From positions 62,001 through 126,000 of IMG/VR virus record IMGVR_UViG_3300018962_000001: 64,000 nucleotides of DNA. One strand, given 5' to 3'. The position numbers were made by a program, and so were the translations under genes. The notes beneath the pieces are model-generated. The model ran no database searches. It worked only from the letters and a program-made list of their open reading frames with translations, and was not told the origin of the DNA. This document shows, in pieces, positions 11,915 to 64,000 of this stretch; within the stretch, counting starts at the first letter, position 1; every line of letters starts with the position of its first letter.

Positions 11915-13393
11915 ATGAGCAAAGGGGGGGGCAGTATGCACAGAGCGCCAATCAGCCAGATTGATTCCACAATCATTCCATTCGAGGTTCGCCAGATTAT
12001 GATGGCGATCGAGGATGCGGGGGGGCACCCCTGGATTGTCGGTGGCTTTATTCGGAATATCCTGATCCGGTCAATCCATCCGTCGATTCCCTGCGAGATC
12101 GACTTTAAAGATATTGACCTGGAAGTCTTCGATCTGGAGCCGGAGGCGGTTTTTGCCATTGTGCGGCCCTTGGTCCCGCATTGCCAGATGGATGTCGGGA
12201 ATCAGTTCCCGGTCATCAAGGCCCGGACCCACAGTGGAATCGAGCTGGATGTTGCCGCGCCACGGCGGGAGCGTAAGACTGGAGCGGGCCATCGGGGCTT
12301 TACGGTCACGGTAGATGTCCATATGCCACTGGCCGAGGCCGCCCGGCGACGAGACTTTCGGATGAATGCGATTGCGCTGGATCTGTGCGGTACGATCGCT
12401 GACCCAATGGACGGCATGGCCGATATTGTCCATCAGGTGATTCGCGTATGTGATCCGGCGGGGTTCCATGAAGATCCGAACCGCGTGCCGCGCGCCATGC
12501 AATTTGCCAGTCGCTTTGATTTTGCCCCGGATGCCGAGTGTATCGCCGCCGCCGCCGCCGCCATTGGCGAGGCTCCCCGGATTCCTGCCGAGATCTGGTG
12601 GGGGGAGTGGGAAAAGTGGGCATCGAAGGGCGTTCGACCCAGCCGAGGACTGCTGTTTCTCCGTGCCTGCGGCTGGATCGGTCTGTTCCCAGAGGCGGCT
12701 GCCTTGATCGGGACGGCCCAGGACCCGGAATGGCACCCGGAAGGCGATGTCTGGACGCATAGCTGCTTAAGCGCCGATCGTGCGGCGGAGATCGCCGCAC
12801 GGGACGGGATCACGGGACGCGCGCGCGCGGCCTTCGTGATTGGCTGCTTTGCGCATGATTTCGGGAAGGCCGAGCCGGGCGTCAGTTTCGTCAAAGACGG
12901 ACGGATTGTGTCACCCGGCCATGATGAGGCCGGAGTTGCTCCGGCGACTCGGTTCTTGAATCGAATCAACGCGCCGCATGCAGTACGCGATCAGGTCATT
13001 GCCTGTGTCCGTCACCATATGGCGCATGTTGGGGTTGAACCAAGTCAGCGAATCGTCAATCGCTGGGCAAAACGATTCCATCCGGCCTCGATTCAGGAGA
13101 TTGCGCGGGTCGCTGAGGCCGACCATTGCGCCCGCCCACCGTTGCCAGGCGGTGCCCCAATGGCTCCCTTTGTGGCGCTGGCCGAGTCCGAGGGGGTTGC
13201 CCATCAGCGCCCGAAGCGGATTATCGAGGGTGGCCGCATCATCGAGATATTTGGGATCGCACCCGGACCACAGGTAGGCATGATCGTCCGGGCTGCCGAG
13301 CAAGCCCAAATTGAAGATCGGGCTTTTAGCGATGAGGCGGGAGCCATTCAATGGATTGCCAACCAGTTCGATCTTGCTCTTGTAACCCCTTGA
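11915..13393 (+). CDS. cca: CCA-adding tRNA nucleotidyltransferase (class II) with HD domain
   Basis: VGGFIRN, KDIDL, RRDFRMNAIA, EDPNRVPRAMQFASRF, HPEGDVWTH...AHDFGK. Confidence 0.85.
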   Translation: MSKGGGSMHRAPISQIDSTIIPFEVRQIMMAIEDAGGHPWIVGGFIRNILIRSIHPSIPCEIDFKDIDLEVFDLEPEAVFAIVRPLVPHCQMDVGNQFPVIKARTHSGIELDVAAPRRERKTGAGHRGFTVTVDVHMPLAEAARRRDFRMNAIALDLCGTIADPMDGMADIVHQVIRVCDPAGFHEDPNRVPRAMQFASRFDFAPDAECIAAAAAAIGEAPRIPAEIWWGEWEKWASKGVRPSRGLLFLRACGWIGLFPEAAALIGTAQDPEWHPEGDVWTHSCLSADRAAEIAARDGITGRARAAFVIGCFAHDFGKAEPGVSFVKDGRIVSPGHDEAGVAPATRFLNRINAPHAVRDQVIACVRHHMAHVGVEPSQRIVNRWAKRFHPASIQEIARVAEADHCARPPLPGGAPMAPFVALAESEGVAHQRPKRIIEGGRIIEIFGIAPGPQVGMIVRAAEQAQIEDRAFSDEAGAIQWIANQFDLALVTP

Positions 13394-13418
13394 CAAACGC
13401 GCCGGGATGCGCTAAGCT
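13390..13418 (+). promoter_or_regulatory. sigma70-type promoter
   Basis: TTGACA-N17-TAAGCT overlapping the cca stop. Confidence 0.75.
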
Positions 13419-13445
13419 GTACGGGTAGCACACACGGAGGATGTA

Positions 13446-13745
13446 ATGCATGATCATGGATATGGGTACGGCCTGGACGATCTGAACGGCTGGGGATATG
13501 CGCGTTATGGTGGCCGCCGCGTCCGGGTCTGGGACTATGCCTGCCCTGATTTTGGGATTCCGCCTGCGCCGACGACACCACCGATGGCGCAGGCCGTGGG
13601 GCCGCAACCGAAGATCACCAGCCGCCAATGGCCGCGCAACAAGAAGCAGGTGGATCAGCAGACCCGCCGCCGCCGCCGGGATCAGAATAAGCGGGCCGGG
13701 GCAACCCGGACGCAGCAGCGCAAGGTCGCCAAGGGAAAGCGATGA
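13446..13745 (+). CDS. basic hypothetical protein
   Basis: GGAGG RBS; Arg/Lys-rich tail. Confidence 0.6.
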   Translation: MHDHGYGYGLDDLNGWGYARYGGRRVRVWDYACPDFGIPPAPTTPPMAQAVGPQPKITSRQWPRNKKQVDQQTRRRRRDQNKRAGATRTQQRKVAKGKR

Positions 13746-14059
13746 CACCCCGGAATAGCGATGAGCAGCAGATTCTTGCCTGGATGAATCAGGTCTATCT
13801 TCGGCTGGTGTACTGCCCCTTCAGATCTTGGATACTGGTTCGGGGTAATGGGCAACAACCGTGGATTGGCGATCGTATCCCTGCTGCCCCTGACTACTTC
13901 GCCCCCGATCCGCGGAGCTTTATCGATCCAGAGACCGCACAGCGCTTGGTGGACCAGGGAAAGGTGGAAATGCGGTATCTCCCGGATCATCCGGTCCAAG
14001 GTGTGCAGTATTACGTGGTCAAGGAGATCGGTGATGCCTCGTCAGAAACGCCAGTATAA
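13742..14059 (+). CDS. hypothetical protein
   Basis: ATGA overlap. Confidence 0.6.
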   Translation: MTPRNSDEQQILAWMNQVYLRLVYCPFRSWILVRGNGQQPWIGDRIPAAPDYFAPDPRSFIDPETAQRLVDQGKVEMRYLPDHPVQGVQYYVVKEIGDASSETPV

Positions 14060-14261
14060 CACCGTCCGAACCGATCAGTTTGAATCGTTGATCGGCCTGT
14101 ACGAAGCGAAGGGAAACTATGAAGCGGCGAGCGCGCTGCGCGGCCTGGCGCGGTCGGTTGGGGCACCCATCGATGAAGCCGTGATCACCACACACAAGGA
14201 GGGGGTCCGAGAAACACTGGCTCGCTGGCAGCAGCAGGATCGTGTGGTATCCAATGGCTGA
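14034..14261 (+). CDS. hypothetical protein
   Basis: AAGGAG RBS. Confidence 0.55.
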   Translation: MPRQKRQYNTVRTDQFESLIGLYEAKGNYEAASALRGLARSVGAPIDEAVITTHKEGVRETLARWQQQDRVVSNG

Positions 14262-50486: not shown

Positions 50487-50575
50487 GGGCGTAAGCCCTC
50501 CTTATTGTTCCCGCCCGGATGGACTTCTCACATGAAAGGGAAGTCCTCCCAGACGCTAACCTCCGGGCGGGGTTT

Positions 50576-50651: not shown

Positions 50652-50787
50652 TAGGTAAGGGAGTGGCAGACTCTCGGTGCCAGGGCGCAGCGGTGGTTGG
50701 GGCTGCGGCACCATCGCGAAGGATACGGATCAGGAGTTCGCACAGCACTCCTGATCCGGCCTTCGATCTGCCGATATAGCTTAGTTG

Positions 50788-50863
50788 GCCGGTATAGCTC
50801 AGTTGGGAGAGCATTTCCTTGGTAAGGAGAAGGTCCTGGGTTCGAGTCCCAGTGCTGGCCCCA
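50788..50863 (+). tRNA. tRNA-Thr(GGT)
   Basis: cloverleaf, CCA. Confidence 0.95.
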
Positions 50864-50883
50864 TTCGTTTGTTCGGAGGATGT

Positions 50884-51183
50884 ATGCATCTCGTGTTCCT
50901 GTTAGCTCCTGATGGCCGTCCGACCACGTTCCAAGTTGGCGAAGGTGATCCTTCAACGGGGGCTGTCTGCGATGACGAGTATGTGCTTGGGTTTGGTATG
51001 GCCTCGGAGGTCGATCCTGCCGGGCCGGACGCGGGCGATGAGGAGCGAGAGCACTTTGTCGCGCTGGTCCGCACCACGGGGCGCGATCTGGTCATGTACC
51101 GGATGACGGAGGATGGCAGCGCGATTGATATGGCGCGTCCGATCGGCATGTTCCTCTGGAGGGACTTTAGTAATGCCGGGTGA
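50884..51183 (+). CDS. hypothetical protein
   Basis: GGAGG RBS. Confidence 0.6.
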   Translation: MHLVFLLAPDGRPTTFQVGEGDPSTGAVCDDEYVLGFGMASEVDPAGPDAGDEEREHFVALVRTTGRDLVMYRMTEDGSAIDMARPIGMFLWRDFSNAG

Positions 51184-51403
51184 TTCCGTGGACGTGTCCC
51201 GGATGCGCCGAGTCGATGAGATCCAGGTGGGTCTGCCCTATCTTGTCGCCTTTCATGCCGATTGTGTCTCCGGTCAGTTTCTTGCGACCCTGATTCATCG
51301 GGACACGAACCCCTATGATCCACCGGAGTATATCCTTTTCTGGAGTAATGGGGTTCGTCTCGCAGGCTATATCGACAACTTCACGATTGAGGAAATGCTA
51401 TGA
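51173..51403 (+). CDS. hypothetical protein
   Basis: chain. Confidence 0.55.
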   Translation: MPGDSVDVSRMRRVDEIQVGLPYLVAFHADCVSGQFLATLIHRDTNPYDPPEYILFWSNGVRLAGYIDNFTIEEML

Positions 51404-51669
51404 GCTGGCGCGATCGGGTCGAGGTCGATGAGCTAGAGGTCGGTGAATTCTACTGGGTCCGCATTGATGCTGATCCAATTCGCGCCAGCTTTGTTGCCCT
51501 GTTACTCGGTGTTGAATCGAGTCAGGATGACACGGAAACGGTGTACACCTTTCACTGGGGCACCGGCGCGGAACTGACCGGCCCGGCCCGGTCGTTTATT
51601 TTCGAGAAGGCGTACATGCCCTCCTATAGTCGAATTCTTTGGAGCGGGAAGGGGTCGACGCCGACTTAG
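51400..51669 (+). CDS. hypothetical protein, probable paralog of 51173-51403
   Basis: VDELEVGEFYWV vs VDEIQVGLPYLV; FHWGTG vs LFWSNG. Confidence 0.6.
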   Translation: MSWRDRVEVDELEVGEFYWVRIDADPIRASFVALLLGVESSQDDTETVYTFHWGTGAELTGPARSFIFEKAYMPSYSRILWSGKGSTPT

Positions 51670-51683
51670 GGACCTTCAGCAAT

Positions 51684-51759
51684 GCCTGCCTAACTCAACT
51701 GGTAGAGTGGCTCTTTTACACGGAGTAAGTTGGGGGTTCGAGTCCCTCGGCGGGCACCA
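51684..51759 (+). tRNA. tRNA-Val(TAC)
   Basis: cloverleaf, ACCA. Confidence 0.95.
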
Positions 51760-51990
51760 CAGGTAGGGCGGCTGTAACCAATGGCCTGCCAGATCGTACC
51801 GGATAGACGTATTCGCCACCTCGATCTGGAAAACCGCCGCCCACACCCGAACGCAACGCGGCGATATGACGTGTTGAGCAACGTGACCTTGCTAGGTGGA
51901 GACAACGGTGAGGACCATCTCTTTGAGGGTGCGACATCGCAAGATTAGCGCCGTTCCACCAATCGGGGAAGGACCGATCGTTCGGGGCGT

Positions 51991-52063
51991 GCCGGAGTGG
52001 CGCAATTGGCAGCGCAGCGGGTTTGTATCTCGCGGGTTGGCGGTTCGACTCCGCCCTTCGGCC
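51991..52063 (+). tRNA. tRNA-Thr(TGT)
   Basis: cloverleaf; CCA not fully encoded. Confidence 0.9.
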
Positions 52064-52086
52064 CACACTATGAAGGATGCCTGATC

Positions 52087-52437
52087 GTGGATGGTGATTC
52101 GATCAATGTGACGGCGATGAACATTCAGCTTCAGCCAGGGCAGCAGATTCAGGCGTATCTCTGGCAGTGCGGCGACGAGTACTGCCAATGCACCGAACCA
52201 CGCATCCAAATTATGGATGCGATGCCGACGTTGCCACCGAGGCAACCGTACTGGACTCCTCGCCGGGATCTCTGGATCGGACCGTTCGGATCGGGCATCC
52301 ATGATTTCCCTGATGAATACGCCCAGACCAAAGCCCAGACTGTTGCAGCAGTGCGAGCGTTTCAGGCGGCAGGATTTGAGGTAAAGCTCGACACCACGAT
52401 CGAGTGGTGGTTGGAAGAATCCACAGACCAGGAGTAA
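52087..52437 (+). CDS. hypothetical protein
   Basis: GTG start after GAAGGA; CGDEYCQC. Confidence 0.55.
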   Translation: MDGDSINVTAMNIQLQPGQQIQAYLWQCGDEYCQCTEPRIQIMDAMPTLPPRQPYWTPRRDLWIGPFGSGIHDFPDEYAQTKAQTVAAVRAFQAAGFEVKLDTTIEWWLEESTDQE

Positions 52438-52608
52438 ACACGAGCGAGGCGATGGGCGAGTGTGGCAGGATGACACCTTTCTGGACCGGCGGCGGCGGCG
52501 GATCTGCCTGGGACGCCACCACGTCCCCAGAAGCGCGGCAGCGCGGGCAGGCAGCCCGACCGAAGGAATCGCTGCACGAGCCGGATCGAGACCGGCCCAC
52601 GCCACCAT

Positions 52609-52683
52609 GCGGCTATCGTCTAGGGGTGAAGATGGGATCTTGCCATGATCCAGACGGCGGTTCGAGTCCGCCTAGCCGCACCA
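52609..52683 (+). tRNA. tRNA-Gly(GCC)
   Basis: cloverleaf, ACCA (A73). Confidence 0.9.
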
Positions 52684-52687
52684 GCAC

Positions 52688-52772
52688 GCAAGCGTGGCGA
52701 AATTGGGAGACGCGCCGCACTTAAACTGCGGTGGCTTCGGTCATGCGGGTTCGAGTCCCGCCGCTTGCACCA
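52688..52772 (+). tRNA. tRNA-Leu(TAA)
   Basis: long variable arm, ACCA. Confidence 0.95.
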
Positions 52773-52803
52773 ACAAAGGATCGCTAGTATCGGGGCTTTC
52801 TCT

Positions 52804-52879
52804 GCCGGTGTGGCGCAATTGGTAGCGCACCTCATTCGTAATGAGGGGGTTGTGGGTTCAAGTCCCACCATCGGCCCCA
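52804..52879 (+). tRNA. tRNA-Thr(CGT)
   Basis: cloverleaf, CCA. Confidence 0.95.
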
Positions 52880-53059
52880 TTCCCGGTTCTCGCTCCGGGT
52901 TAGGACCGAAAGGGCAAGGTCGTCGCGAGTCGACACGACCACCACCAAAAGCGAAACAAGACGCGCGTGCGGGAACCCGGCACTTGGTCGTGACTAGCCG
53001 ATCAGGCGTGGCATGTCGGTCTGTGCGAATCCCACGTCCCGCAACGTAGCTTCTCCTTC

Positions 53060-53088
53060 TTGACATACGCGCTATCTTGCGCTATGAT
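53060..53088 (+). promoter_or_regulatory. sigma70-type promoter
   Basis: TTGACA-N17-TATGAT. Confidence 0.85.
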
Positions 53089-53114
53089 GCAAAGGTAGCA
53101 TACAAGGAGGCGAT

Positions 53115-53471
53115 ATGGAGGCTGAGGCAAAGATTGAGGTATCGTGGCACCAAGTCGAAGCGATTCGGGCGCGCATAGCCTTAATCTTGAAACATGATCG
53201 CTGTTTTGATGCCAGTCCGTTACGAGTCGCCGCGGCGCAGGTGTGCTTTGACCTGTATCGGATTCATCACTTGCGGGTTGACCGGCCCACAGCGGATTAT
53301 GCCGCTGCCCTATTTGCGATGGTCGAGCACAAAGGGCACCTGTTGTTTGGAAGTCGTCCTGGATGTGCCTATTGTCAAGGTCTGATTCGCTTTAATGAGC
53401 GCGATGCGGCGGCACTCCGGGCTACCTATGAGTCCGCAGATCGCGCGGTGGAGACTGTTGCGCATGAGTGA
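53115..53471 (+). CDS. hypothetical protein
   Basis: AAGGAGG RBS. Confidence 0.7.
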   Translation: MEAEAKIEVSWHQVEAIRARIALILKHDRCFDASPLRVAAAQVCFDLYRIHHLRVDRPTADYAAALFAMVEHKGHLLFGSRPGCAYCQGLIRFNERDAAALRATYESADRAVETVAHE

Positions 53472-53661
53472 TGCGTATGATTTTACCGTCGCCCTTGGCC
53501 GATCCTTTGCCAATCCTGCGGCGGCGGCGGCGTGGCTCAATACGCCGAGTCCTGCATTAAAGGGCGAGCGGCCCGTTGTGGTGGCGCACCGTGGCGAGTA
53601 TGACGCGGTGATCGCGGCCATCTCGGCGGATCGTGAATCCGCCGAGAAAGAGATCGTATGA
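53464..53661 (+). CDS. Xre/MbcA/ParS antitoxin C-terminal domain protein
   Basis: AAAWLNTPSPALKGERP...GEYDAVIAAI. Confidence 0.7.
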   Translation: MSDAYDFTVALGRSFANPAAAAAWLNTPSPALKGERPVVVAHRGEYDAVIAAISADRESAEKEIV

Positions 53662-53858
53662 AGATCTTGTTCGCCTATCATACCGATCAAGACCAGCTCC
53701 GTGCCTTTGCCGATAAAGTACAGGCGGATGTTCGGGCACATATCGGTACCTATTGTGAGGATGAAGAATCCTCGGTGGATCTCCATATCGAGGAAGCAGA
53801 TCTGTTTGAGGTTCGGACGATCGCACATGCCTTTGGCGTCGACCTCGAAGAAGCCTGA
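53658..53858 (+). CDS. hypothetical protein
   Basis: ATGA overlap. Confidence 0.6.
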   Translation: MKILFAYHTDQDQLRAFADKVQADVRAHIGTYCEDEESSVDLHIEEADLFEVRTIAHAFGVDLEEA

Positions 53859-53871
53859 TCGCTGTTCTTGA

Positions 53872-53946
53872 TGTCCGGTAGCTCAATGGTAGAGCGGCGC
53901 ACTGTTAATGCGCTGGTTGTGGGTTCGAGTCCCACCTGGGCAGCCA
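53872..53946 (+). tRNA. tRNA-Asn(GTT)
   Basis: cloverleaf, GCCA. Confidence 0.95.
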
Positions 53947-54095
53947 GTCGATCGAGGTCTGCGGAATCTGGGTCGGACCCCGTGTACGCCGGGCGGCTAC
54001 GGCGTAGCTAGGTGCTGGGACGTGCAGCATCCCTTGTATCTCGCCAGGGGCGAAGCGAGTACCTGCCGGATGATCCGCAGATCGATCCGGCACGC

Positions 54096-54169
54096 TGCGG
54101 AGTAGAGGAGTGGTCGTCCTCATCTGGCTCATAACCAGAAGATCGGTGGTTCGAATCCACCCTCCGCGA
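54096..54169 (+). tRNA. tRNA-Met(CAT), initiator-like
   Basis: weak T1-G72 and A11-U24, but only two G-C pairs at the AC stem end; no CCA. Confidence 0.85.
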
Positions 54170-54173
54170 CTAT

Positions 54174-54248
54174 GGGGGCGTATGCTATGGGTAATGCAGC
54201 GAGACTTTCAATCTCGTGATGGGGGTTCGAGTCCCCCCGTCCCTACCA
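54174..54248 (+). tRNA. tRNA-Glu(TTC)
   Basis: loop CT-TTC-AA, ACCA. Confidence 0.9.
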
Positions 54249-54269
54249 TTTTGTTGGATCGGAGGCCCT

Positions 54270-54965
54270 ATGTGGCACCCGGCGATGCCGGAGGCGTATC
54301 AGAACCAGATCCTTACGGCGGATTGCCGGGCATTTGCCGCGCAGATCCCGGACGAAAGCTGTGACTTGATCTTTACTGATCCCGTGTACGAGCGCATCGA
54401 GGACTATGCCTGGCTCGCGGAAACGGCGCAGCGAATCTTGAAACCAAACTCGGCCTGTCTCGTCTGGTATGATCATCCACGTTTTGATGCTGCCTATCGT
54501 GTGATGGTTCCACCCCTCACCTATGTGTGGCAGATGTACTGGCAGCGGTATGGCGCACCTACGGCGGGGCGTGCGGGCATTACGGTGATTACGCCGTGTC
54601 TTTGGCTTGAAAAGGGGCGAAGTCGAACGTATCGCAAAATCGGGGATGCCTACGGCGCTGGATTTGGTGGGGATCGGCTCTTTGAGCATAAGTGGTCAAA
54701 GCCCTATGGCCTTGTGCGCAAATGGGTGGATGCCTTTACCAAACCGGGGATGGTGGTCGCCGATTTCTTCTGTGGGTCAGGCGTGGTACCGGGTGCGTGT
54801 ACCGAGCTAGGGCGCAACTATCTCGCCTGCGAGATCGATCCGCACACGGCAAGCAAAGCCCGGCAGGCGGTCAGTCGGATTCAGGTCCCCCATCCCGATC
54901 TTGTCGGTCAGGAGGGCTGGGACATGGGCGCTCAGAAAAAGAAACGGAAAGGATCACGGACATGA
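54270..54965 (+). CDS. DNA methyltransferase (N4-C/N6-A, beta class)
   Basis: DLIFTDPVY precedes VVADFFCGSG. Confidence 0.85.
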   Translation: MWHPAMPEAYQNQILTADCRAFAAQIPDESCDLIFTDPVYERIEDYAWLAETAQRILKPNSACLVWYDHPRFDAAYRVMVPPLTYVWQMYWQRYGAPTAGRAGITVITPCLWLEKGRSRTYRKIGDAYGAGFGGDRLFEHKWSKPYGLVRKWVDAFTKPGMVVADFFCGSGVVPGACTELGRNYLACEIDPHTASKARQAVSRIQVPHPDLVGQEGWDMGAQKKKRKGSRT

Positions 54966-55708
54966 GGGTTGAGTCATTTGAGGTAGCGATCCCGGAAGGG
55001 TTGGAGAGTGGTGAGGGCTATGTGCATGTCGCCTCCGGGCAGGTATTTTCGGTCGCCCTGCACAATTACGATCCGACCCATCGGTGTAACGCGACCGTGA
55101 CGGTCAATGGCCGTCCGGCGGGAACCTTCCGCCTGGACCGCGGAGGATTGGCTCAGGCAGTGACTCGCATCACCCATCCATCGGATTCCCAACAACTATT
55201 TACGGCGTTCGCCGTGGAGAGCACTGCCGGACAGATTGTGGGTGCAGCACCAACGGCCCAGGAGGGCGGCCTCATCGAGGTTCGCTTTGTGCCGGAGGAT
55301 CGGAGGCCCTATCGTCCGGTGCCTCTGGTTGTGTCAGAGGCATCTCCAACCTCGACCTGGCCGGGCGTCCCCAAGCGAATGATGCCAGGCGCTCCGCCGA
55401 TCTCGTATGACTCGGAAGGGCTTATGGGCGCGGCGGGTGCGGCGATTGATATGGGCGACATCGCCTTTGCCAGCCCCGGTCCCGCGCGGCGTTCAACGCC
55501 AGCGCCGGAATCGACACTCCAGGCTGCGACGGTCGGCTTAACGGGCCACACGAGCCATCAGTACCGGAGCGCTCCCGCCATGCCACTTGATGAGGCACGG
55601 GCCGTCACGATCCGCCTCCGGCTGGTAATCAATCCCGGCCTGGCACCGCAGGGCACGTCTGGGCAGGGTGTCGATCGGGGCAATCCGATCCCGCCACCGA
55701 TCGGGTAA
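54962..55708 (+). CDS. hypothetical protein
   Basis: ATGA overlap; beta-rich N-terminus. Confidence 0.65.
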   Translation: MRVESFEVAIPEGLESGEGYVHVASGQVFSVALHNYDPTHRCNATVTVNGRPAGTFRLDRGGLAQAVTRITHPSDSQQLFTAFAVESTAGQIVGAAPTAQEGGLIEVRFVPEDRRPYRPVPLVVSEASPTSTWPGVPKRMMPGAPPISYDSEGLMGAAGAAIDMGDIAFASPGPARRSTPAPESTLQAATVGLTGHTSHQYRSAPAMPLDEARAVTIRLRLVINPGLAPQGTSGQGVDRGNPIPPPIG

Positions 55709-55718
55709 GGGCAACGAT

Positions 55719-56012
55719 ATGCGTAATTGGCAGGCGGATCTTACCCGGTATTGTGAACTGTATCCGATGTACTATGCCGATCTGGTGGAACGGTGGACGA
55801 TTGAACAGGTCGGCGATCGCTGGGTGCTCTGTGAAGCAGGGCGGATCGCGACTCCCGACGAGTATGAGTCGGCGGCGGCGGCGGATACCGATCGATGGCT
55901 CCAGATTTATATCGCCCTGGATCAGCACGACCAATGTCGATCGATCGATCGAGCACTCCGACGTGAACTGGCGCATCGCATGGACGCCTATCGTGATGTC
56001 TTAGAACCCTAA
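55719..56012 (+). CDS. hypothetical protein
   Basis: stop abuts tRNA-Cys. Confidence 0.6.
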   Translation: MRNWQADLTRYCELYPMYYADLVERWTIEQVGDRWVLCEAGRIATPDEYESAAAADTDRWLQIYIALDQHDQCRSIDRALRRELAHRMDAYRDVLEP

Positions 56013-56088
56013 CTCGGCGAGGCGAAATGGGAACGCGGCTGTCTGCAAAACAGCTATTGAGCGGGATCGTAACCCGCCGCCGAGTCCA
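56013..56088 (+). tRNA. tRNA-Cys(GCA)
   Basis: U73, CCA; A8 and T loop ATCGTAA. Confidence 0.85.
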
Positions 56089-56209
56089 TGAGCCACCGAT
56101 GGTTGGTAACGCCCAGCGGTGCAGTGACGGCGTGATCCCCGTACCGTGCTCAACGGGGATGCCTGGGACCGAGGCGAGCTAAGAACTGCCCTCAATCGGT
56201 CCACCTTAC

Positions 56210-56286
56210 GGCGCTGTCGCCAAGCGGATCAAGGCACTGGTCTTCGGAACCAGCATCCGCAGGTTCGAATCCTGCCAGCGTCGCCA
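56210..56286 (+). tRNA. tRNA-Arg(TCG)
   Basis: loop CT-TCG-GA, GCCA. Confidence 0.95.
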
Positions 56287-56438
56287 GAGTGTCCGATCTC
56301 TAGTGTGGTGCATGGGGGGATCGGTCGGGCCGGGGTGGAATCCGGTACCATTGCGGTGTGGTTTCCGTGCCGCGCTCAACGGAAACAGCCTCCCGGAGCC
56401 AGGGCGAGTTCTCCTTTCACTCACATGGCTCCAGTTTT

Positions 56439-56515
56439 GGCCCGGTCTTACTAACGGTCGAGGTGGCATGATTCTCAATCATGAGGTACGGGTTCGATTC
56501 CCGTCCGGGCTACCA
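56439..56515 (+). tRNA. tRNA-Glu(CTC)
   Basis: loop TT-CTC-AA, ACCA; weak D stem. Confidence 0.85.
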
Positions 56516-56527
56516 CGGAGATCACGG

Positions 56528-57064
56528 ATGTATCGACTACGATTTGAGTTTGATGAGGAGGGCGTTCCCCCGAAACAGATGATTTGTACGGCGGATGGAA
56601 CCGCCGTGGTTGAGGTACTCGACGAGCCAAGCTGCAAGCTGGGCGGGAAACTGGTTGAAACTCCCGGTGCAGCCTGGACATGGGAATGGCACGGGCCGTG
56701 GTCATGGGAGCCGAATGATTGGGCCGCCTCGCCGTTGACCGTCCAGATTCTTGCTCTCCTCAACCACCAGACGTTGCCGAACACTAACCCGATTGTCCGA
56801 GATACGTTTCTTGATCTCTCCGATCGGGAATGGACAGTGGGCGAATGGTGCGCGGCCTATATGCTGCGTGGTGCCCCCTCCGTTGAACAAGCAAAAGTGC
56901 TTGCGGATCGAGTCCGCTGGTACCTCGCCATCCATGACGCCACCTGGGGACCACCACGTGAATCTGCCGATCCCACGATTCGGGCATTGGCGGAACAAGC
57001 CGATTCATCCGTGTTGGTGTTTCGTCGTTACGATGGCTGGGCGCGCGAGCACTACGATGTTTAA
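56528..57064 (+). CDS. hypothetical protein
   Basis: GGAG RBS. Confidence 0.65.
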   Translation: MYRLRFEFDEEGVPPKQMICTADGTAVVEVLDEPSCKLGGKLVETPGAAWTWEWHGPWSWEPNDWAASPLTVQILALLNHQTLPNTNPIVRDTFLDLSDREWTVGEWCAAYMLRGAPSVEQAKVLADRVRWYLAIHDATWGPPRESADPTIRALAEQADSSVLVFRRYDGWAREHYDV

Positions 57065-57071
57065 GCCGCTC

Positions 57072-57100
57072 TTGACATTCGCGGCGCGATGCACTACAGT
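57072..57100 (+). promoter_or_regulatory. sigma70-type promoter
   Basis: TTGACA-N17-TACAGT. Confidence 0.65.
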
Positions 57101-57107
57101 GATAGCG

Positions 57108-57254
57108 ATGGAAGTGCGGTATCTGTACTGGCTGTTTCAGCGGTGTCGTCAGTGCCGACATCCACAATGGCAGCATCGGATTATTCGATCGTGGGGCAGC
57201 TATATCGAATTGTGCCACGCACCAGAGTGTTTGTGTGACCATTTTGTTGAATGA
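57108..57254 (+). CDS. small Cys/His-rich protein
   Basis: CRQCRHPQWQH...CHAPECLCDHF. Confidence 0.5.
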   Translation: MEVRYLYWLFQRCRQCRHPQWQHRIIRSWGSYIELCHAPECLCDHFVE

Positions 57255-57330
57255 TCCCGGTTGGTCTAACTGGTAGGACGCCTGCCTCTGGAGCAGGAAG
57301 TCTGGGGTTCGAATCCTCGACCGGGAACCA
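57255..57330 (+). tRNA. tRNA-Gln(CTG)
   Basis: T1-A72, loop CT-CTG-GA, ACCA. Confidence 0.9.
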
Positions 57331-57645
57331 ATGGTCGGATCGGCAGTTTGGCTCGCGGCCATACAAACACAAAGCTATTCCGATCCGGCCATACCATCCG
57401 GCGGAACGTTGAAGGAGCGGCTGTTTGCTACGACATTGCAGGCCGTCACCGCTCACAAATCAGGGATAAGGTGGACGTAAAAACAAACCCCCTGTACGCC
57501 GGACCCAACCCCGATCATCAGACTGGCAATCCTCGACGGGCGTGCACACCCGCGGACGTAATCGAGGTGGAGGGGTCATCGATGTTAGCGCCAGTCGGAA
57601 CGGGAGCGATTTCCCTCAATAGGGGAGGCTTCGCTCCCAGTTTCT

Positions 57646-57719
57646 ACCCCGCGCGCACGAGGGCGTGCACCAATCTCTGAGGTTGGACGATTCAGGTTCG
57701 AGTCCTGAGCGGGGAACCA
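57646..57719 (+). tRNA. tRNA-Gln(CTG), atypical second copy
   Basis: A1/A72 mismatch, G8, loop CT-CTG-AG, ACCA. Confidence 0.7.
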
Positions 57720-57720
57720 T

Positions 57721-57792
57721 GTGGCTATCGTCTATAGGTAAGACGGCTGATTGTGGATCAGCAGAACCGGGATCGCTGGCCCGGTAGCCACC
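57721..57792 (+). tRNA. tRNA-His(GTG)
   Basis: C73; no encoded G-1 or CCA; 8-nt T loop. Confidence 0.8.
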
Positions 57793-57820
57793 TAGTTTCA
57801 CTCGATCGCGGGAGAGATAC

Positions 57821-58117
57821 ATGACGAAACGTGATGAGCAATCAACGCTAGGGGATCATCTCTGGCCCTTGGGGAAGATGTTAGCGTCGGGGATGTCACC
57901 CTCACGGTCCGATTCAAAGGCCCGCTATATTCTTCAAATTCCTGAGATCCTTGATCAAGAACTGCACGCCATCGCCCAACGGCGCGGCGAGACACCAGAG
58001 GAGCTGATTCGGCAAGGGCTGAAGATGTTGCTCCTGGCGATCAAGGTTGAAGAAGATCCGGAGGCAGATTTTCTGATTCGCGACCAGCAAGGTGAACGAG
58101 TCGTCACCTTGATCTAA
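57821..58117 (+). CDS. ribbon-helix-helix (CopG-like) regulator
   Basis: RYILQIPEILDQELHAIAQRRGETPEELIRQGL. Confidence 0.65.
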   Translation: MTKRDEQSTLGDHLWPLGKMLASGMSPSRSDSKARYILQIPEILDQELHAIAQRRGETPEELIRQGLKMLLLAIKVEEDPEADFLIRDQQGERVVTLI

Positions 58118-58127
58118 ATATTGTTAA

Positions 58128-58199
58128 GCCTGCGTAACTCAACGGTAGAGTACCTGCCTTTTAAGCAGGGAGTTGTGGGTTCGAGTCCCACCGCAGGTA
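58128..58199 (+). tRNA. tRNA-Lys(TTT)
   Basis: cloverleaf; 3' end TCA instead of CCA. Confidence 0.9.
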
Positions 58200-58208
58200 T
58201 CACTATAT

Positions 58209-58334
58209 GGGCCTGCTGGTGAAAGTGGAAGTCACCACGTTGTGGAACCGATAGCAACGCGCGGCAGATCGGTTTCGGGACGGCGATCGCCTTCAGGGGT
58301 GTACGTCTCCAGGTTCGAGTCCTGGGCAGGCCCT
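58209..58334 (+). ncRNA. tRNA-like RNA with enlarged AC loop and long variable region
   Basis: GGGCCTGC/GCAGGCCC, D arm, CGTTG/CAACG with 12-nt loop, canonical T arm. Confidence 0.6.
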
Positions 58335-58444
58335 CCTCCTACCGCCGCGTACAAAAGTGAGGTTTTACTCCCGCTCCACCGGAGTGCCCTCGAATCGACG
58401 TAGGGTTTTAAGGCGCGGTGGTGGGGACCGATCGAAGGAGCTGT

Positions 58445-58702
58445 ATGAGCGGCGATGAGATCAGCATGGAGATTCGGGCCTTCCAGGGCGATCAGACCGC
58501 CCTAACGATCATGGCGCGGCACTCCGGGCGGCAGCGCCCGCTTGCCGAGGCGTTGGCAGAACAAGTCGTTGCTGATTCACGTGACTTCGGCGCTGGGCGA
58601 TTTGATCAGAAGCTGTTGGTCGTGGTGGTGGACGGGGATCTGTATCAGGTGATCGTCCGTCGCCTCTATAACGAGGCTGATCCACCAGCGGAGTCTTCAT
58701 GA
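58445..58702 (+). CDS. hypothetical protein
   Basis: AAGGAG RBS. Confidence 0.6.
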   Translation: MSGDEISMEIRAFQGDQTALTIMARHSGRQRPLAEALAEQVVADSRDFGAGRFDQKLLVVVVDGDLYQVIVRRLYNEADPPAESS

Positions 58703-58824
58703 TCCGAGATGACTTTTGCGATAGCTGCGGTACCTGGAACCGGACGATCGAGTTCGTGACCAATACTGGGCACCCCCTGTCGGTTGTGCCTTTCCTGTGT
58801 GCGCGGGGCCGTTCGGATCTTAGA

Positions 58825-58911
58825 GGAGAGTTGGCCGAGTGGGAAGGCACCGCTTTGCTAAAGCGGCGAGGCCGTAAGGTTGCGTGGGTTCGATCCCCAC
58901 ACTCTCCCCCA
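58825..58911 (+). tRNA. tRNA-Ser(GCT)
   Basis: long variable arm, CCA; C73. Confidence 0.9.
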
Positions 58912-58925
58912 TAGGAAAGGCTGCG

Positions 58926-59903
58926 ATGGGCCGAGGCGCATTCGAGCATCAGTATCAAAGTATCGACGTTCCGGGTATCCGCACCGATCAGCCGGATAGC
59001 AGCCCTGTGTCCTTGGCGGTCCCTTGGGATCTGACGGCGCAGGGAGTCCGAGCGGATCTCATCTGTGGCGATAACGTGGCTCCCGCGATCTGGATGCTGG
59101 AGCAACAACGGTCGTTTCGGCTGATCTATCTCGACCCGCCGTTTGCCAGTGGGAAGGGATACGCCGCGCGGGTGAATGGCGCGAAAGGCGTGCAGTCGCA
59201 AGTGGTTCCGGCGTACACCGATCGTGATGATCTCGATACCTATCTGGCATGGCTCCAGCCACGCCTGCGCCTGGCGCGCGATCTGCTGGCCGAGGATGGG
59301 ACGCTCTATGTGCATCTTGACTGGCACGCGGTTCACTACGTCAAAGTGATGCTGGATCGGTTGTTTGGGCGGGATCGGTTTCTCAACGAGATTATCTGGT
59401 GCTATCACGGGCCGTCACCGATTACCTCGGCCTTTAATCGGAAGCACGACACGATTCTGGCCTATACCAAGAGCCGCAGCTACTATTTCAATGCTGACGC
59501 GGTGCGGACTCCTTATGATCCAGCAACCGTGCGGACCTTTCAAAGTAGCTCGAAGGCGGGATTTGGGAAGGTACCAAATCTGGAGCGCGGCAAAGTGCCG
59601 GAAGATTGGTGGTATTTCCCGGTTGTGGCCCGGCTGCACGGTGAGCGAGTCGGCTACCAGACCCAGAAGCCGGAGGCGCTGCTCAGGCGGATTGTGCTGG
59701 CGTCGAGCGCGCCCGACGATGCGATCCTGGATTTCTTCTGTGGGTCCGGGACAACGGGCGTGGTTGGTGCGGCGCTGGGGCGGCATCCAACCTTGTGTGA
59801 TCGCAACCCGATCGCGATTGAGAAGGCCGTGTATCGCCTGCGCCGCCTGGACCCCGTTCCAGACGTGCATGTGTGGCGCTACGCGACTGATCCGATAGCA
59901 TGA
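58926..59903 (+). CDS. DNA adenine methyltransferase (beta class, Mod-like)
   Basis: LIYLDPPF, NEIIWCY, YQTQKPEALL, ILDFFCGSGTT. Confidence 0.9.
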   Translation: MGRGAFEHQYQSIDVPGIRTDQPDSSPVSLAVPWDLTAQGVRADLICGDNVAPAIWMLEQQRSFRLIYLDPPFASGKGYAARVNGAKGVQSQVVPAYTDRDDLDTYLAWLQPRLRLARDLLAEDGTLYVHLDWHAVHYVKVMLDRLFGRDRFLNEIIWCYHGPSPITSAFNRKHDTILAYTKSRSYYFNADAVRTPYDPATVRTFQSSSKAGFGKVPNLERGKVPEDWWYFPVVARLHGERVGYQTQKPEALLRRIVLASSAPDDAILDFFCGSGTTGVVGAALGRHPTLCDRNPIAIEKAVYRLRRLDPVPDVHVWRYATDPIA

Positions 59904-59908
59904 GATAC

Positions 59909-59994
59909 GGAAGGACAAGCCGATTGGCGACGGCATCCGGCTCGAACCCGGACGAGCGCAAGCCTTGGGGGTTCAACTCCCTCTCCTTCCGCCA
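59909..59994 (+). tRNA. tRNA-Ser(CGA)
   Basis: long variable arm, GCCA; C8. Confidence 0.9.
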
Positions 59995-60016
59995 GAAACC
60001 TTGAAAGGATGAGCCA

Positions 60017-60280
60017 ATGCCCCATGTACCACCATTTGAGCCAGATTTAGACCAGCCCACGTTTAGTTCCGAGCAGTGGGATGCGATCGAAGCCTTGCAG
60101 CGAGTATTCAAGCGTTGCGCGCGCTTAGGTATCGGTATGTATGCGCAGTGCGATACGTTATATGTCTTTCAGGCTGCCGAAGAAGCCAAAATCCCGATTG
60201 CAGAGATTCATGACTTTTTACAGCGGCGCGGCCACGACATCGACCATCATCGAGTCTTTAAAGATTGCGGAGCGTTCTAG
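60017..60280 (+). CDS. hypothetical protein
   Basis: AAGGA RBS. Confidence 0.6.
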   Translation: MPHVPPFEPDLDQPTFSSEQWDAIEALQRVFKRCARLGIGMYAQCDTLYVFQAAEEAKIPIAEIHDFLQRRGHDIDHHRVFKDCGAF

Positions 60281-60292
60281 CGGATTGACTAC

Positions 60293-60368
60293 GCCCGCAT
60301 AGCTCAGTGGACAGAGCAGCAGCCTTCTAAGCTGCGTGTCGCCGGTTCGATCCCGGCTGCGGGTGCCA
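60293..60368 (+). tRNA. tRNA-Arg(TCT)
   Basis: canonical, A20 present, GCCA. Confidence 0.95.
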
Positions 60369-62362: not shown

Positions 62363-62372
62363 GGAGCGCTGG

Positions 62373-62612
62373 ATGCCATTTCGGCCATCGCCACGTCGTC
62401 TGGTCCGCTGGGGATCAGCCGGTGCAATGCACCGGCTCTATGAGTATCTCTTTGCGATCCCGTACCTGGGCATGGTCTGCCCGATCTGTGATGTGCCGAT
62501 TGACGATCTCGACACGTTTAAACAGGCCCGGTTCGGCCATCCCGGCGATCTGGTGCATCGGGCCTGTTGGCCGATCTACCTTATACGCTACCCGAAGGAT
62601 CATCCACGATGA
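62373..62612 (+). CDS. small Zn-finger protein
   Basis: CPIC...HRAC; AAGGAG RBS. Confidence 0.55.
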   Translation: MPFRPSPRRLVRWGSAGAMHRLYEYLFAIPYLGMVCPICDVPIDDLDTFKQARFGHPGDLVHRACWPIYLIRYPKDHPR

Positions 62613-63016
62613 CACCGATACGACGACTTACCTCGGCTGAGGAGCACCAGGAAGCGCTGGAACGCCTGGGCACACTTGTGGAATCTGATCCGCCCCGCGA
62701 TAGCCCACTCGGCCAGGAAGCGTATCTCCTGGGGCTGGTAATCGAGGACTATGAACGCCAGGCGTTCCCGATGCGATTTCCCGATCCCATTGACGCCATT
62801 CACTTTCGGATGGAGCAGCAGGGTCTAGGATTGGGCGATCTCGTTCCCATCCTCGGAACACGCGTTGTCGTTTATGAGGTAATGCACCGACAGCGTCGTC
62901 TGACTCTCTCGATGATCCGCAAAATCCATGCGGCCCTCAAGATTCCAGCCGAGAGCTTAATCCAACCGTACTTCCTGACTGGAAAGGGTCCATACGATGA
63001 TGCGAGGATCACATGA
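62609..63016 (+). CDS. higA: HigA-type antitoxin (HTH-Xre), no adjacent HigB
   Basis: EEHQEALER...LGLVIEDYE...PDPIDAIHFRMEQQGL...RRLTLSMIRKIHAALKIPAESLI. Confidence 0.85.
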   Translation: MTPIRRLTSAEEHQEALERLGTLVESDPPRDSPLGQEAYLLGLVIEDYERQAFPMRFPDPIDAIHFRMEQQGLGLGDLVPILGTRVVVYEVMHRQRRLTLSMIRKIHAALKIPAESLIQPYFLTGKGPYDDARIT

Positions 63017-63324
63017 TCTATGTTGATGAACTCCGTCGCTACTTCCAAGCGCCCAAGCCAGGATCGGAGCGCTGGTTTGGCAATGGCAAAGAGTCCTGCC
63101 ACCTGACCGCAGACACCCCGGAGGAGCTGCATGCCTTTGCCCAGCGACTCGGCCTCCGGCGATCGTGCGCACAAAGTAGTGGCTATACCCTTCACTATGA
63201 TCTCATTCCGCAGAAGCGCGCACGCGCCGTCGCGCTTGGGGCCAGGGAAGTCACCGCACGCGAGCGTGCGCGGATGATCGCGGCGCAGATTGAAAAGGAT
63301 CGCCCTGATGTGTCCGGCGTGTGA
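63013..63324 (+). CDS. DUF4031 family protein
   Basis: IYVD...CHLTADTPEELHAFAQRLGLRR...HYDL...RARAVALGA. Confidence 0.8.
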   Translation: MIYVDELRRYFQAPKPGSERWFGNGKESCHLTADTPEELHAFAQRLGLRRSCAQSSGYTLHYDLIPQKRARAVALGAREVTARERARMIAAQIEKDRPDVSGV

Positions 63325-63565
63325 GGGGCGGGGGGGATCGGAGGTTATCGCCTGTCCGGGCGCACGGCTCCTGTGGAAGTCCTGCGGGGCATGCGGGGGA
63401 CGCGGAACCATGACCGAGGCCGAGATCGCGGCGTATCACGAGCGGCAGGTGGTTGCGCGGGCCTTGCGCGAGGACCGGCGGCGGCGGCGGCGGACGATCG
63501 CCGAGGAAGCGGCGGCGCGCGGGATGGATCTGGTTGCCTATAGTCGGTTGGAACGGGGGTATTGA
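63308..63565 (+). CDS. DnaJ-type Zn finger plus HTH protein
   Basis: CPACEGRG, CGACGGRG, EEAAARG...YSRLERG. Confidence 0.6.
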   Translation: MCPACEGRGGSEVIACPGARLLWKSCGACGGRGTMTEAEIAAYHERQVVARALREDRRRRRRTIAEEAAARGMDLVAYSRLERGY

Positions 63566-64000
63566 TGGAGGGTGGATCGAGTCTCCAGGAAATCCGCGCG
63601 GTGGATCTGTGGATGGCGGTGCAGTATTTGAGTTGGGAACCGCTGGGCGAGGATCGCTACGCCACGCCTGACGGGGAGCGGCGGGCAGATGACGCTCCCT
63701 ATCTCACGAGCAGCTGGGATTGGATGCTTCCACACCTCCCGCCCGGATGGTATGTATTCCGGGTTGAGCGCCTTGATCTGTGGAATGTCTGTGAGCGACG
63801 TTGGCCGTATGCGCCTGATCGGATCTGGGCACAACACTGGAATGGCCCTCTGGCGATTGGCCTTGCCCTCCAAGCGCATGCCCAGGGCCAGATCCATCAG
63901 ATCCCGCTTGATCCCAAGAACCCGTGGCTCTACATCGATGTCGATGGCGTGTTGAACGGTACCTATGAGGGATGGGTCCAACTCCGCCCAAATGCGATCG
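63565..64000 (+). CDS. fusion protein with HAD-superfamily phosphatase motif I (3'-truncated by window)
   Basis: hand translation from ATG 63565 is open to the window end: ...PLAIGLAL...WLYIDVDGVLNG. Confidence 0.6.
   Translation, partial: MEGGSSLQEIRAVDLWMAVQYLSWEPLGEDRYATPDGERRADDAPYLTSSWDWMLPHLPPGWYVFRVERLDLWNVCERRWPYAPDRIWAQHWNGPLAIGLALQAHAQGQIHQIPLDPKNPWLYIDVDGVLNGTYEGWVQLRPNAI

Follow-up and report, generated by a model that had tools for sequence, protein, structure and literature searches.

A stretch of DNA of 64,000 nucleotides (the window throughout), comprising bases 62001-126000 of the single 204,685-bp virus record IMGVR_UViG_3300018962_000001, harbours a self-contained gene module (39203-43916) that joins a protein with the fold of Ro60 to a ubiquitin-like protein (Ubl), an E1-type adenylyltransferase, a JAMM peptidase and a tRNA-like RNA. 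This module has its own promoter and is homologous to a gene cassette that occurs across bacterial phyla. The record derives from a biocrust metagenome, is rated 100% complete by CheckV, has a G+C content of about 60% and carries its genes on the plus strand; the virus is a jumbo phage. Besides the module, the interval analysed (11915-64000) holds a second and separate thing, a tRNA island with scattered RNA-maintenance genes. The anatomy of the cassette is well supported: its gene content, conservation and protein folds, the existence and placement of the RNA family, and a predicted docking of Ubl on E1 were all observed or computed from the loci described below.

An earlier reading of this sequence (the original prediction) had named five features, a CCA-adding/HD enzyme, an RNA ligase, a Ro60-like protein, a HAD-motif protein and 33 tRNAs, all of which exist in the window, and had interpreted them as a dispersed toolkit for RNA end healing and sealing. 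That interpretation is supported in part: the RNA-maintenance genes and the linkage to tRNAs stand, but neither a complete healing arm nor a conserved pairing of Ro60 with the ligase was found. The maintenance genes are real but constitute an ordinary jumbo-phage set without a demonstrable pathway; we call the set ordinary because the same repertoire, namely tRNAs, Rnl1/Rnl2 ligases, HADs including the Swiss-army-knife type, a CCA-adding enzyme and Ro/TROVE proteins, has already been described for jumbo phages (PMC7824862). What had been labelled the Ro60 operon is likewise real, yet the label missed that these genes form a cassette for ubiquitin-like conjugation, accompanied by a tRNA-like RNA of its own.

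A cassette shared by bacteria and phages

In the window, the cassette genes are encoded in the order Ubl, Ro60-like protein, vWA-HTH protein, p289, JAMM peptidase and ThiF-type E1. A sigma-70-like promoter (TTGACA-17-TATGAT, 11/12; 39203-39231, plus strand) lies between the stop codon of the preceding RNA ligase gene at 39166 and the Ubl start at 39285. The gene order is repeated in the contexts of the bacterial homologues, where a small open reading frame (ORF) is followed by the Ro60-like gene, a gene for a protein of about 300 amino acids, a Prok-JAB gene and a ThiF gene. Relatives of the Ro60-like gene are present in at least 244 GTDB species genomes and in a 595-kb phage, mostly within the cassette, and the phyla represented include Chloroflexota, Planctomycetota, Abditibacteriota, Cyanobacteria, Myxococcota and Desulfobacterota.

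The constancy of the individual members was assessed by tblastn (E 1e-4) with the window proteins as queries, in 84 loci from GTDB and homologue contexts and in 80 metagenome loci; many of these contigs are short, so that the counts are lower bounds. Ubl was found in 53/84 and 50/80 loci, p289 in 55/84 and 51/80, E1 in 52/84 and 29/80, and JAB in 30/84 and 26/80, while the vWA-HTH gene occupied the same position in 14/84 and 9/80. This last gene is thus an optional member; its product in the window (41086-41841, plus strand; 251 amino acids) combines a vWA domain with a helix-turn-helix (HTH) domain (Pfam VWA_4, 1.4e-7; HTH_23, 2e-5). The CCA enzyme was absent from both sets (0/84 and 0/80). 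Clustering of the ORFs in 82 loci, which is noisy on account of overlapping frames in GC-rich DNA, returned no recurrent family beyond the known members.

The only other phage record in which tblastn located the cassette is the 595-kb LR756511.1. It carries all five core genes, among which seven tRNA or tRNA-like genes are interspersed; two of the seven belong to the motif family described below and end in NCCA. Scans of IMG/VR with the Ro60-like protein and with its alignment produced no relatives, and megablast of the cassette against GenBank phages gave no match.

The cassette is, then, a widespread bacterial and phage module, and apparently an undescribed one. Neither the 2006 catalogue of prokaryotic ubiquitin-like operons (PMC1779556) nor the work on the Bub and Bil systems (including PMC11601596) mentions a Ro-like/vWA partner or the cassette, and no ThiF, vWA or ubiquitin-like neighbours are mentioned in the tRNA-array papers searched. 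A preprint on Asgard viruses lists Ro60, RNA ligase and E1-like genes in one virus but draws no connection between them.

Two lineages deserve separate mention. The complete genome of the Abditibacteriota member IAD-21 contains two copies of the cassette (L030, L034) and, in this lineage (L030, L034, L026, L037, L124), a pair of tRNA-Tyr(GUA) and tRNA-Ser(UGA) genes lies 62-74 bp before each Ubl gene. In another group of loci, mostly from Gemmataceae (L016, L063-L070, L077, L079, L082), the Ro60-like gene has no detectable Ubl, p289, JAB or E1 gene within 6 kb, and several of these loci retain tRNA-like elements just upstream of the Ro60-like gene; they may represent a stand-alone sub-type or a diverged cassette.

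A protein with the Ro60 fold

The central cassette gene (39575-41089, plus strand; the open frame begins at 39512) encodes a protein of 504 amino acids in which a helical-repeat ring is joined to a vWA domain with a DxSxS..TD MIDAS. Its family is large and tightly conserved, with 921 matches among 8000 scored candidates at 50-59% identity, and the MIDAS residues D321, S323, S325, T406 and D407 are invariant. The AlphaFold model, built on 26 homologues (pLDDT 84.7), matches over its full length only Ro60 proteins (TM 0.6-0.68, E about 3e-10), including those of human, Xenopus, Deinococcus (Rsr) and the Thermus phage phiLo. The top 13 matches in the PDB are all Ro60, Rsr or phage Ro60, with vWA-domain structures ranking far behind, and the Swiss-Prot models that match are those of the TROVE proteins Ro60, p80 and TEP1. 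The description of this protein as Ro60-like therefore holds for the fold, a ring plus a vWA domain with MIDAS, but not for membership of the TROVE family by sequence.

Comparison with the bacterial Ro60 protein Rsr and its RNAs YrlA and YrlB, as in the Salmonella rsr-yrlBA-rtcBA operon and in phage phiLo, extends the likeness beyond the overall fold: in both cases the gene has beside it, on its own strand, a gene for a structured RNA with tRNA-like arms, and both systems occur in phages. The differences are nevertheless considerable. RtcB and RtcA genes do not accompany the Ro60-like gene, and no PF01139 match exists anywhere in the phage genome, unlike the Rsr-RtcB operons. What marks the cassette RNA is a 5' CUUACAAAC motif in place of the known Ro-binding helix. 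Finally, the Ro60-like gene is embedded among genes for Ubl, E1, JAMM and p289, an arrangement undescribed for rsr within the literature searched.

A ubiquitin-like arm

The first gene of the cassette (39285-39512, plus strand) specifies a Ubl of 75 amino acids ending in ...RPEAVFG-stop; it is conserved in the homologous loci, and the C-terminal ...FG-stop recurs in 50 of 53. In three protein clusters of about 600 amino acids (P0061, P0100 and P0107), Ubl (residues 11-76) and the Ro60-like protein form a single in-frame fusion with Ubl at the N-terminal end. Because of these natural fusions, Ubl and the Ro60-like protein can be regarded as functionally linked and the JAMM peptidase has an obvious job. 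In two fusion loci (L004 and L012, 8001-9803), the tRNA-like elements are placed after the E1 gene.

The E1 gene (43130-43789, plus strand; 219 amino acids) is of the ThiF type (Pfam ThiF, 6.6e-24), with an invariant GxGxxG loop, DxxDN metal site (D117/D120/N121), R125 and Cys173. A predicted 2:2 complex of E1 with Ubl scored an ipSAE of 0.88, against 0.15 for the best control, a mark that was reached by 58/80 solved complexes and by 2/110 mismatched pairs; three runs shared at least 96% of contacts, with a partner pLDDT of at least 85. In the predicted complex, residues 69-75 of Ubl dock at the ATP-binding loop (GxGxxG) and the metal site (DxxDN) of E1, and the model supports a likeness to activation of the MoeB-MoaD type.

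The JAMM/JAB metallopeptidase gene (42644-43108, plus strand; probable start ATG 42701) matches Pfam Prok-JAB (1.1e-7) and the NCBIfam desampylase model (1.3e-6), and its translation contains the HTH..S..D (HxH..S..D) motif. The remaining core protein, p289 (41845-42714, plus strand; 289 amino acids), is modelled at a pLDDT of 91 as a helix, two OB-like barrels, further helices and a small C-terminal domain that bears an invariant Cys252 (AGICLSG), followed by an acidic tail. One homologue has an N-terminal zinc ribbon. No match to p289 was obtained in the Atlas, and among 1.8 billion representatives a profile search recovered its own family and nothing else. A role for p289 as an E2 was considered and rejected: Foldseek against the PDB and AFDB clusters, and a search independent of Foldseek, gave weak OB folds only.

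These components, an E1 with an ATP site, a JAMM peptidase and a modifier with a C-terminal glycine that is predicted to dock in the E1 site, are those of a ubiquitin-like system. The Bil, Bub/6E, CBASS Cap2-Cap3, archaeal SAMP/UbaA/JAMM and Thermus TtuB/TtuC systems likewise combine a JAMM protein with a ThiF-type E1, whose ATP site is intact and which has a conserved Cys, and with a small, beta-grasp-like modifier whose C-terminal Gly is exposed; some versions of prokaryotic Ubl operons also encode Ubl as a fusion that requires cleavage. The cassette differs in containing no UBC-fold E2, DUF6527 or CD-NTase and in adding as core members a Ro60-fold protein, an OB/Cys protein and tRNA-like RNAs; the 2006 catalogue (PMC1779556) has no entry for it.

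Another possibility is that the cassette is a sulfur carrier system like ThiS/ThiF, MoaD/MoeB, TtuB/TtuC or Urm1/Uba4, in which a C-terminal thiocarboxylate on Ubl would supply the sulfur for tRNA thiolation while the ring holds the tRNA. The best family matches of E1 are indeed ThiF/MoeB adenylyltransferases, Ubl has a C-terminal Gly, both E1 and p289 have an invariant Cys, and tRNA and tRNA-like genes lie in tight linkage with the cassette. However, the cassette lacks a rhodanese, a cysteine desulfurase and a PP-loop thiolase, the C-terminus of Ubl is FG rather than GG, and the JAMM gene and natural Ubl-Ro60 fusions point to protein processing or conjugation; we regard sulfur transfer as improbable. 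Comparably unlikely, in our judgement, is a conflict system resembling Bil, Bub or CBASS Cap2/Cap3, which in bacteria would serve against phages or stress by sensing tRNA damage with tRNA-like decoy RNAs, and which the phage would have captured for counter-defence. The bacterial E1/JAB/Ubl operons characterised so far all act in defence or adjoin it (PMC11601596), the cassette is distributed patchily across phyla and is carried by two huge phages, and tRNA arrays have themselves been proposed to be anti-defence elements (PMC12803027). On the other hand, no recognisable effector (nuclease, pore or NADase) is found in the cassette, and the bacterial contexts examined showed no defence-island neighbours, no PADLOC scan having been made.

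A family of tRNA-like RNAs

Starting 47 nt past the E1 stop codon, and preceded by a promoter-like site (11/12 with TG; 43786-43813, plus strand), is a tRNA-like RNA (43836-43916, plus strand) that carries a 5' CAUACACA motif, has D, anticodon and T arms and an acceptor of 4 bp, and lacks CCA. ARAGORN calls it tRNA-Ser(UGA), and Rfam RF00005 matches it at 50.1 bits, covering only model positions 4-67. Bacterial tRNA-Ser has a long variable arm. The element at 43836 has a UGA anticodon without such an arm, pairs in the acceptor at 4 of 7 positions and lacks CCA, so that it does not qualify as an ordinary tRNA.

Elements of this kind accompany the cassette elsewhere. A true linkage of the Ro60-like gene to tRNA genes is seen in the same-strand tRNA or tRNA-like genes that adjoin cassettes across loci. 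Among 81 non-redundant GTDB and context loci, 88 tRNA genes lie in 323 kb upstream of the cassette against 8 in 230 kb downstream, and in 14 loci a tRNA gene is found within 700 bp of the cassette start. In four bacterial loci, arrays of 10, 16, 18 and 24 tRNAs end 54-195 bp before the Ubl gene, and in this the cassette resembles the long tRNA arrays known from bacteria, plasmids and phages, the phage of the window having 36 tRNAs. ARAGORN calls were made in 26 of 80 metagenome loci, all on the cassette strand and mostly between the Ubl and Ro60-like genes. Many of the cassette-side calls are unlike ordinary tRNAs, having Leu or Ser anticodons without a long variable arm or, in some cases, anticodon loops of 6 or 8 nt.

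All of the aberrant cassette-side calls share the 5' motif C[U/A]UACAAAC (CUUACAAAC). About half of the family have fewer than 5 of 7 acceptor pairs and 11/35 end in NCCA; in the shorter members the D arm is missing, while the 5' motif, the T arm and an anticodon-like hairpin are retained. A sequence profile recovered 46 elements in 39 of 162 sequences, all on the plus strand, and a strict motif pattern gave 24 matches on the plus strand against 0 on the minus strand in 1.47 Mb, every one of them within 1.5 kb upstream of the Ro60-like gene. A covariance model was then built from 35 members and run on loci without earlier calls. It placed 1-4 tandem copies just upstream of the Ro60-like gene or, where Ubl abuts the Ro60-like gene as it does in the window, just after E1. 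At E <= 1e-4, 58 of 58 matches in 38 held-out loci were on the plus strand. In the held-out sequences, 94% of cells were paired, against 67% in shuffles and 38-54% when slid, with 144 compensatory cells against 39, figures that are biased in favour of the model by an alignment fitted to it. In all, at least 75 of the 161 loci, near-duplicates among them, have the element, as does the window; many of the other loci lack upstream sequence.

We give very little credence to the notion that the tRNA adjacency is incidental, whether because mobile islands integrate at tRNA genes or because tRNA islands are insertion hot spots. Phage tRNA islands do often hold unrelated small genes, of which the DNA methylase at 58884 is an example. 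Incidental adjacency, however, fits poorly with elements that are placed within the cassette itself, where they separate the Ubl gene from the Ro60-like gene and without exception follow the cassette strand, that share a motif absent from ordinary tRNAs, and many of which have no D arm or acceptor stem and arbitrary anticodon loops.

A proposed ribonucleoprotein controlled by ubiquitin-like conjugation

As to RNA binding, the conjugation target and the biological role of the cassette, we infer, with moderate confidence, that it specifies a Y-RNA-like ribonucleoprotein that is controlled by ubiquitin-like conjugation and acts on the tRNA pool. The Ro60-like ring would bind the tRNA-like RNA, much as Ro60/Rsr binds tRNA-like Y RNAs, and the two would form a ribonucleoprotein that handles tRNAs or tRNA-like molecules. 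E1 would adenylate the C-terminal glycine of Ubl, which could then be transferred by way of E1 Cys173, p289 Cys252 or both to a component or client of the particle, and the JAMM peptidase would free Ubl from the natural Ubl-Ro60 fusions or from conjugates. In the phage, where the module stands at the head of a tRNA island, it would probably keep the phage tRNA pool functional during infection.

Several observations weigh against this proposal. The Ro60-like protein has no sequence match to Pfam TROVE (E <= 0.01), PHROG, NCBIfam or the PDB, and its identity to Ro60 is 12-16%. The E1-Ubl score could stem from resemblance to the solved MoeB-MoaD or ThiF-ThiS complexes. Pfam and NCBIfam reveal no UBC-fold E2 among the cassette proteins, and p289 has weak OB-fold matches only (Foldseek E 3e-3, VIA Z 7.6), to the N-domains of proteasomal ATPases and to domains of the S1/cold-shock type. 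In the window, the tRNA-like element follows E1 rather than preceding the Ro60-like gene, and its acceptor is degenerate. The Rfam Y RNA models do not match the tRNA-like RNAs, and in a search of RNA-seq data the runs holding the sequence were DNA from the biocrust study only. The homologous loci are, moreover, related by descent, with some near-duplicates, and the loci that yielded the RNA pattern and models are of one kind with those in which the elements were then counted; the independent evidence for the RNA consists of its strand and position bias and the 38 held-out loci.

A variant in which the RNA itself is the substrate strikes us as highly improbable. The C-terminal glycine of Ubl, once activated by E1, would be esterified to the 3'-terminal adenosine of the tRNA-like RNA while this is held in the Ro60-like ring, with JAMM reversing the reaction; about one third of the tRNA-like RNAs end in NCCA, and the conjugate would be a protein-RNA product akin to aminoacylation.

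Returning to the ribonucleoprotein that handles tRNAs under ubiquitin-like control, we suggest more tentatively, and at somewhat less than even chances, that the cassette defines a new class of particles, Ro60-like/Y-RNA-like in kind, which ubiquitin-like conjugation would govern and which would be coupled to tRNA arrays. What Ro60 and the Y RNAs do has long been puzzling in bacteria and animals alike, and most prokaryotic Ubl systems still lack a known target. The cassette physically joins these two questions and adds a defined, conserved tRNA-like RNA. A compact system of 5-6 proteins and an RNA, which recurs by tRNA arrays both in bacteria and in two huge phages that are unrelated, makes both questions testable together. 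As regards phages, the cassette suggests that a tRNA island can bring with it a dedicated RNA-protein handling module besides repair enzymes.

RNA ligase, CCA-adding enzyme and HAD candidate

The RNA ligase gene (38507-39166, plus strand) matches PF09414 at 1.4e-25, and nucleotidyltransferase motifs I, III, IV and V are invariant in the family (K42, D44, G45, N47, E91, E170, G171 and K191; motif I is KxDGxN). Its product of 219 amino acids is predicted to be a minimal ATP-dependent RNA ligase comprising the nucleotidyltransferase domain only. The family numbers 6427 homologues, most of them stand-alone proteins of about 210 amino acids and some of about 343 with an additional N-terminal domain; the window protein spans only positions 134-341 of the 342-position phrog_24030, and its nearest solved relative is the Naegleria Rnl5 ligase at an E of just 0.22. 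The C-domain of Rnl2 and the N-terminal OB domain of Rnl5 are accessory domains used for nick sealing. Neither is present in the ligase of the window. Of the 33 records with the ligase in a GenBank phage collection, all those listed are genomes of 234-735 kb.

An ORF for 180 amino acids (37968-38510, plus strand) whose end overlaps the ligase start has no Pfam, PHROG or NCBIfam match and was found by tblastn in no homologous cassette locus (0/84 and 0/80). It was considered as a source of the N-terminal domain that the short ligase lacks and rejected, showing no similarity to the N-domain of the long homologues.

The ligase had been described as lying directly upstream of the Ro60 operon and as the partner that takes the place of RtcB there. 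The position is correct, but the 11/12 promoter at 39203-39231 separates the ligase stop from the first cassette gene, and tblastn detected the ligase in 0/161 homologous bacterial and metagenomic loci (0/84 and 0/80); in LR756511.1, the only other cassette phage, the PF09414 ligases and the CCA-type enzyme are all encoded over 120 kb away. As a partner of the Ro60-like gene, the ligase is not conserved.

Further from the cassette, the gene at 11915-13393 (plus strand) encodes a protein of 492 amino acids, a class II nucleotidyltransferase of the CCA-adding type with an HD phosphohydrolase domain, as had been predicted. The head domain matches Pfam PolyA_pol (5.1e-11, 43.4 bits; cut-off 23) and the second domain Pfam HD (1.6e-4, 22.4 bits; cut-off 22), so that the protein has the Pol-beta head and bacterial-type HD of class II CCA-adding enzymes. 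It also matches the PHROG tRNA nucleotidyltransferase phrog_2244 at 8.4e-52. The best NCBIfam model is a multifunctional CCA addition/repair protein (5.9e-41; 140.6 bits, below the equivalog cut-off of 451) and the best solved relative is the bacterial CCA-adding enzyme 1miv (4.8e-11), with CCA enzymes and poly(A) polymerases alike among the PDB matches. Because the protein stays below the NCBIfam equivalog cut-offs, CCA specificity, rather than poly(A) or A addition, is on sequence grounds only likely. The idea that CCA addition is needed to mature the phage tRNAs did not hold: most of the island tRNAs encode CCA, and the enzyme is therefore not needed for their maturation.

The HAD-motif protein (265 amino acids) begins at 63565 on the plus strand, the window holding the 5' part of its gene (63565-64000), which ends 362 bases further on. 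The motif DVDGVLNG is present in the HAD-like C-terminal half, but the score stays below threshold: the only Pfam match is HAD_SAK_2, the model of the 'Swiss-army-knife' RNA-repair HADs (E 0.009-0.03, 15-17 bits against a cut-off of 27.5). The clusters that neighbour it structurally in the Atlas are those of NIF/FCP1 and of HAD_SAK_2, with a TM of about 0.5 by query and 0.47-0.79 by hit. The protein is weakly identified as a HAD, possibly a phosphatase of the RNA-repair type.

The complete 205-kb genome contains no match to polynucleotide kinase (AAA_33), PNK3P, RtcB (PF01139), 2H or RlaP. The phage thus supplies no complete healing arm, contrary to what the original prediction had supposed. 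In T4, Pnkp and Rnl1 repair tRNA cleaved by PrrC; the window likewise has a phage ATP-dependent RNA ligase beside phage tRNA functions, but no Pnkp-type kinase/phosphatase was found and the ligase is of the PF09414 family, not Rnl1. Another parallel is with the jumbo-phage RNA repair sets of Iyer et al. (2021), which include PNK-HAD or Swiss-army-knife HAD proteins. In common with these the window has, besides tRNAs, a ligase of the PF09414 family, a CCA-adding/HD enzyme, a Ro-fold protein and a HAD with a weak likeness to HAD_SAK_2; it differs in lacking the kinase, RtcB, 2H and RlaP, in the minimal, domain-only form of its ligase, and in having a Ro-fold protein of a different, cassette-bound family.

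Whether the CCA enzyme, ligase, HAD and Ro60-like protein form one healing-and-sealing pathway for tRNAs cut by anticodon nucleases, with the ligase replacing RtcB as the partner of Ro60, is on this evidence doubtful rather than far-fetched. All four gene types are present, and exactly such a set has been described for jumbo phages (PMC7824862); the ligase clade is confined, in the phage collection, to the large and tRNA-rich genomes listed there; LR756511.1 also has PF09414 ligases and a CCA-type enzyme; and in the window the ligase sits between a tRNA gene and the cassette. Set against this are the missing 5' kinase and other healing genes, the distance or absence of the ligase at every other cassette, the separate cassette promoter with the genes scattered across 52 kb, and a ligase that lacks an accessory nick-sealing domain alongside a HAD whose identification is below threshold.

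Elsewhere, homologues of the ligase lie near genes of NAD and ADP-ribose metabolism in three metagenomic contexts, all jumbo-phage-like contigs of 232-673 kb (L086, L087, L088). The neighbouring genes are those for NADAR, NAMPT, NMNAT-Nudix, ADP-ribosylglycohydrolase and WGR-PARP. In L086, the NADAR gene is flanked by two tandem PF09414 genes, and the WGR-PARP gene is in the 673-kb contig (L088). The window itself encodes a protein of 487 amino acids (32920-34383, plus strand) with a WGR domain (1.5e-6) followed by a region like ATP-dependent DNA ligases, for which the NCBIfam NHEJ ligase domain scores 7.6e-18, below its cut-off.

The tRNA island and neighbouring elements

Where 33 tRNAs had been counted, ARAGORN finds 36 and Rfam 31. 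Nothing pointing to the permuted tRNAs of the original prediction was seen, no search having been aimed at them. The ARAGORN genes comprise one at 37684, one at 43840, which is the tRNA-like element following E1, and an island of 34 further genes (45029-60368, plus strand; ARAGORN, Rfam), most with encoded CCA. The first of them (37684-37767, plus strand) is a tRNA-Arg(UCU) of 84 nt with a long class II-type variable arm and no encoded CCA, preceded by a promoter-like site (10/12; 37639-37667, plus strand).

Between the tRNA-like element and the island, an 11/12 sigma-70-like promoter (44268-44296, plus strand) is followed by about 700 bases, to 45000, without a convincing ORF or tRNA, and terminator-like hairpins are located at 44599-44626 and 44953-44971. 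The segment 44268-45000 may encode a noncoding RNA. An Rfam match to mir-4436 in this segment was below threshold and probably due to chance.

Two aberrant tRNA-like genes near the start of the island (45538-45612 and 45765-45836, plus strand) have the same 5' end, AUGCUUAC, and the same ...UAC leader; of the two, one reaches just 39 bits in Rfam and the other is missed at the gathering threshold. A UAC immediately before the 5' end is also seen at several ordinary island tRNAs. Weak matches to the tRNA-like covariance model (17-27 bits), uncalled by ARAGORN, occur on the plus strand at 44098-44147, 46274-46391 and 46694-46767 and may be degenerate tRNA-like elements within the island. The methylase gene mentioned above (58884-59903, plus strand), which also lies within the island, encodes an N6/N4 DNA methyltransferase (PF01555, 3.6e-45).

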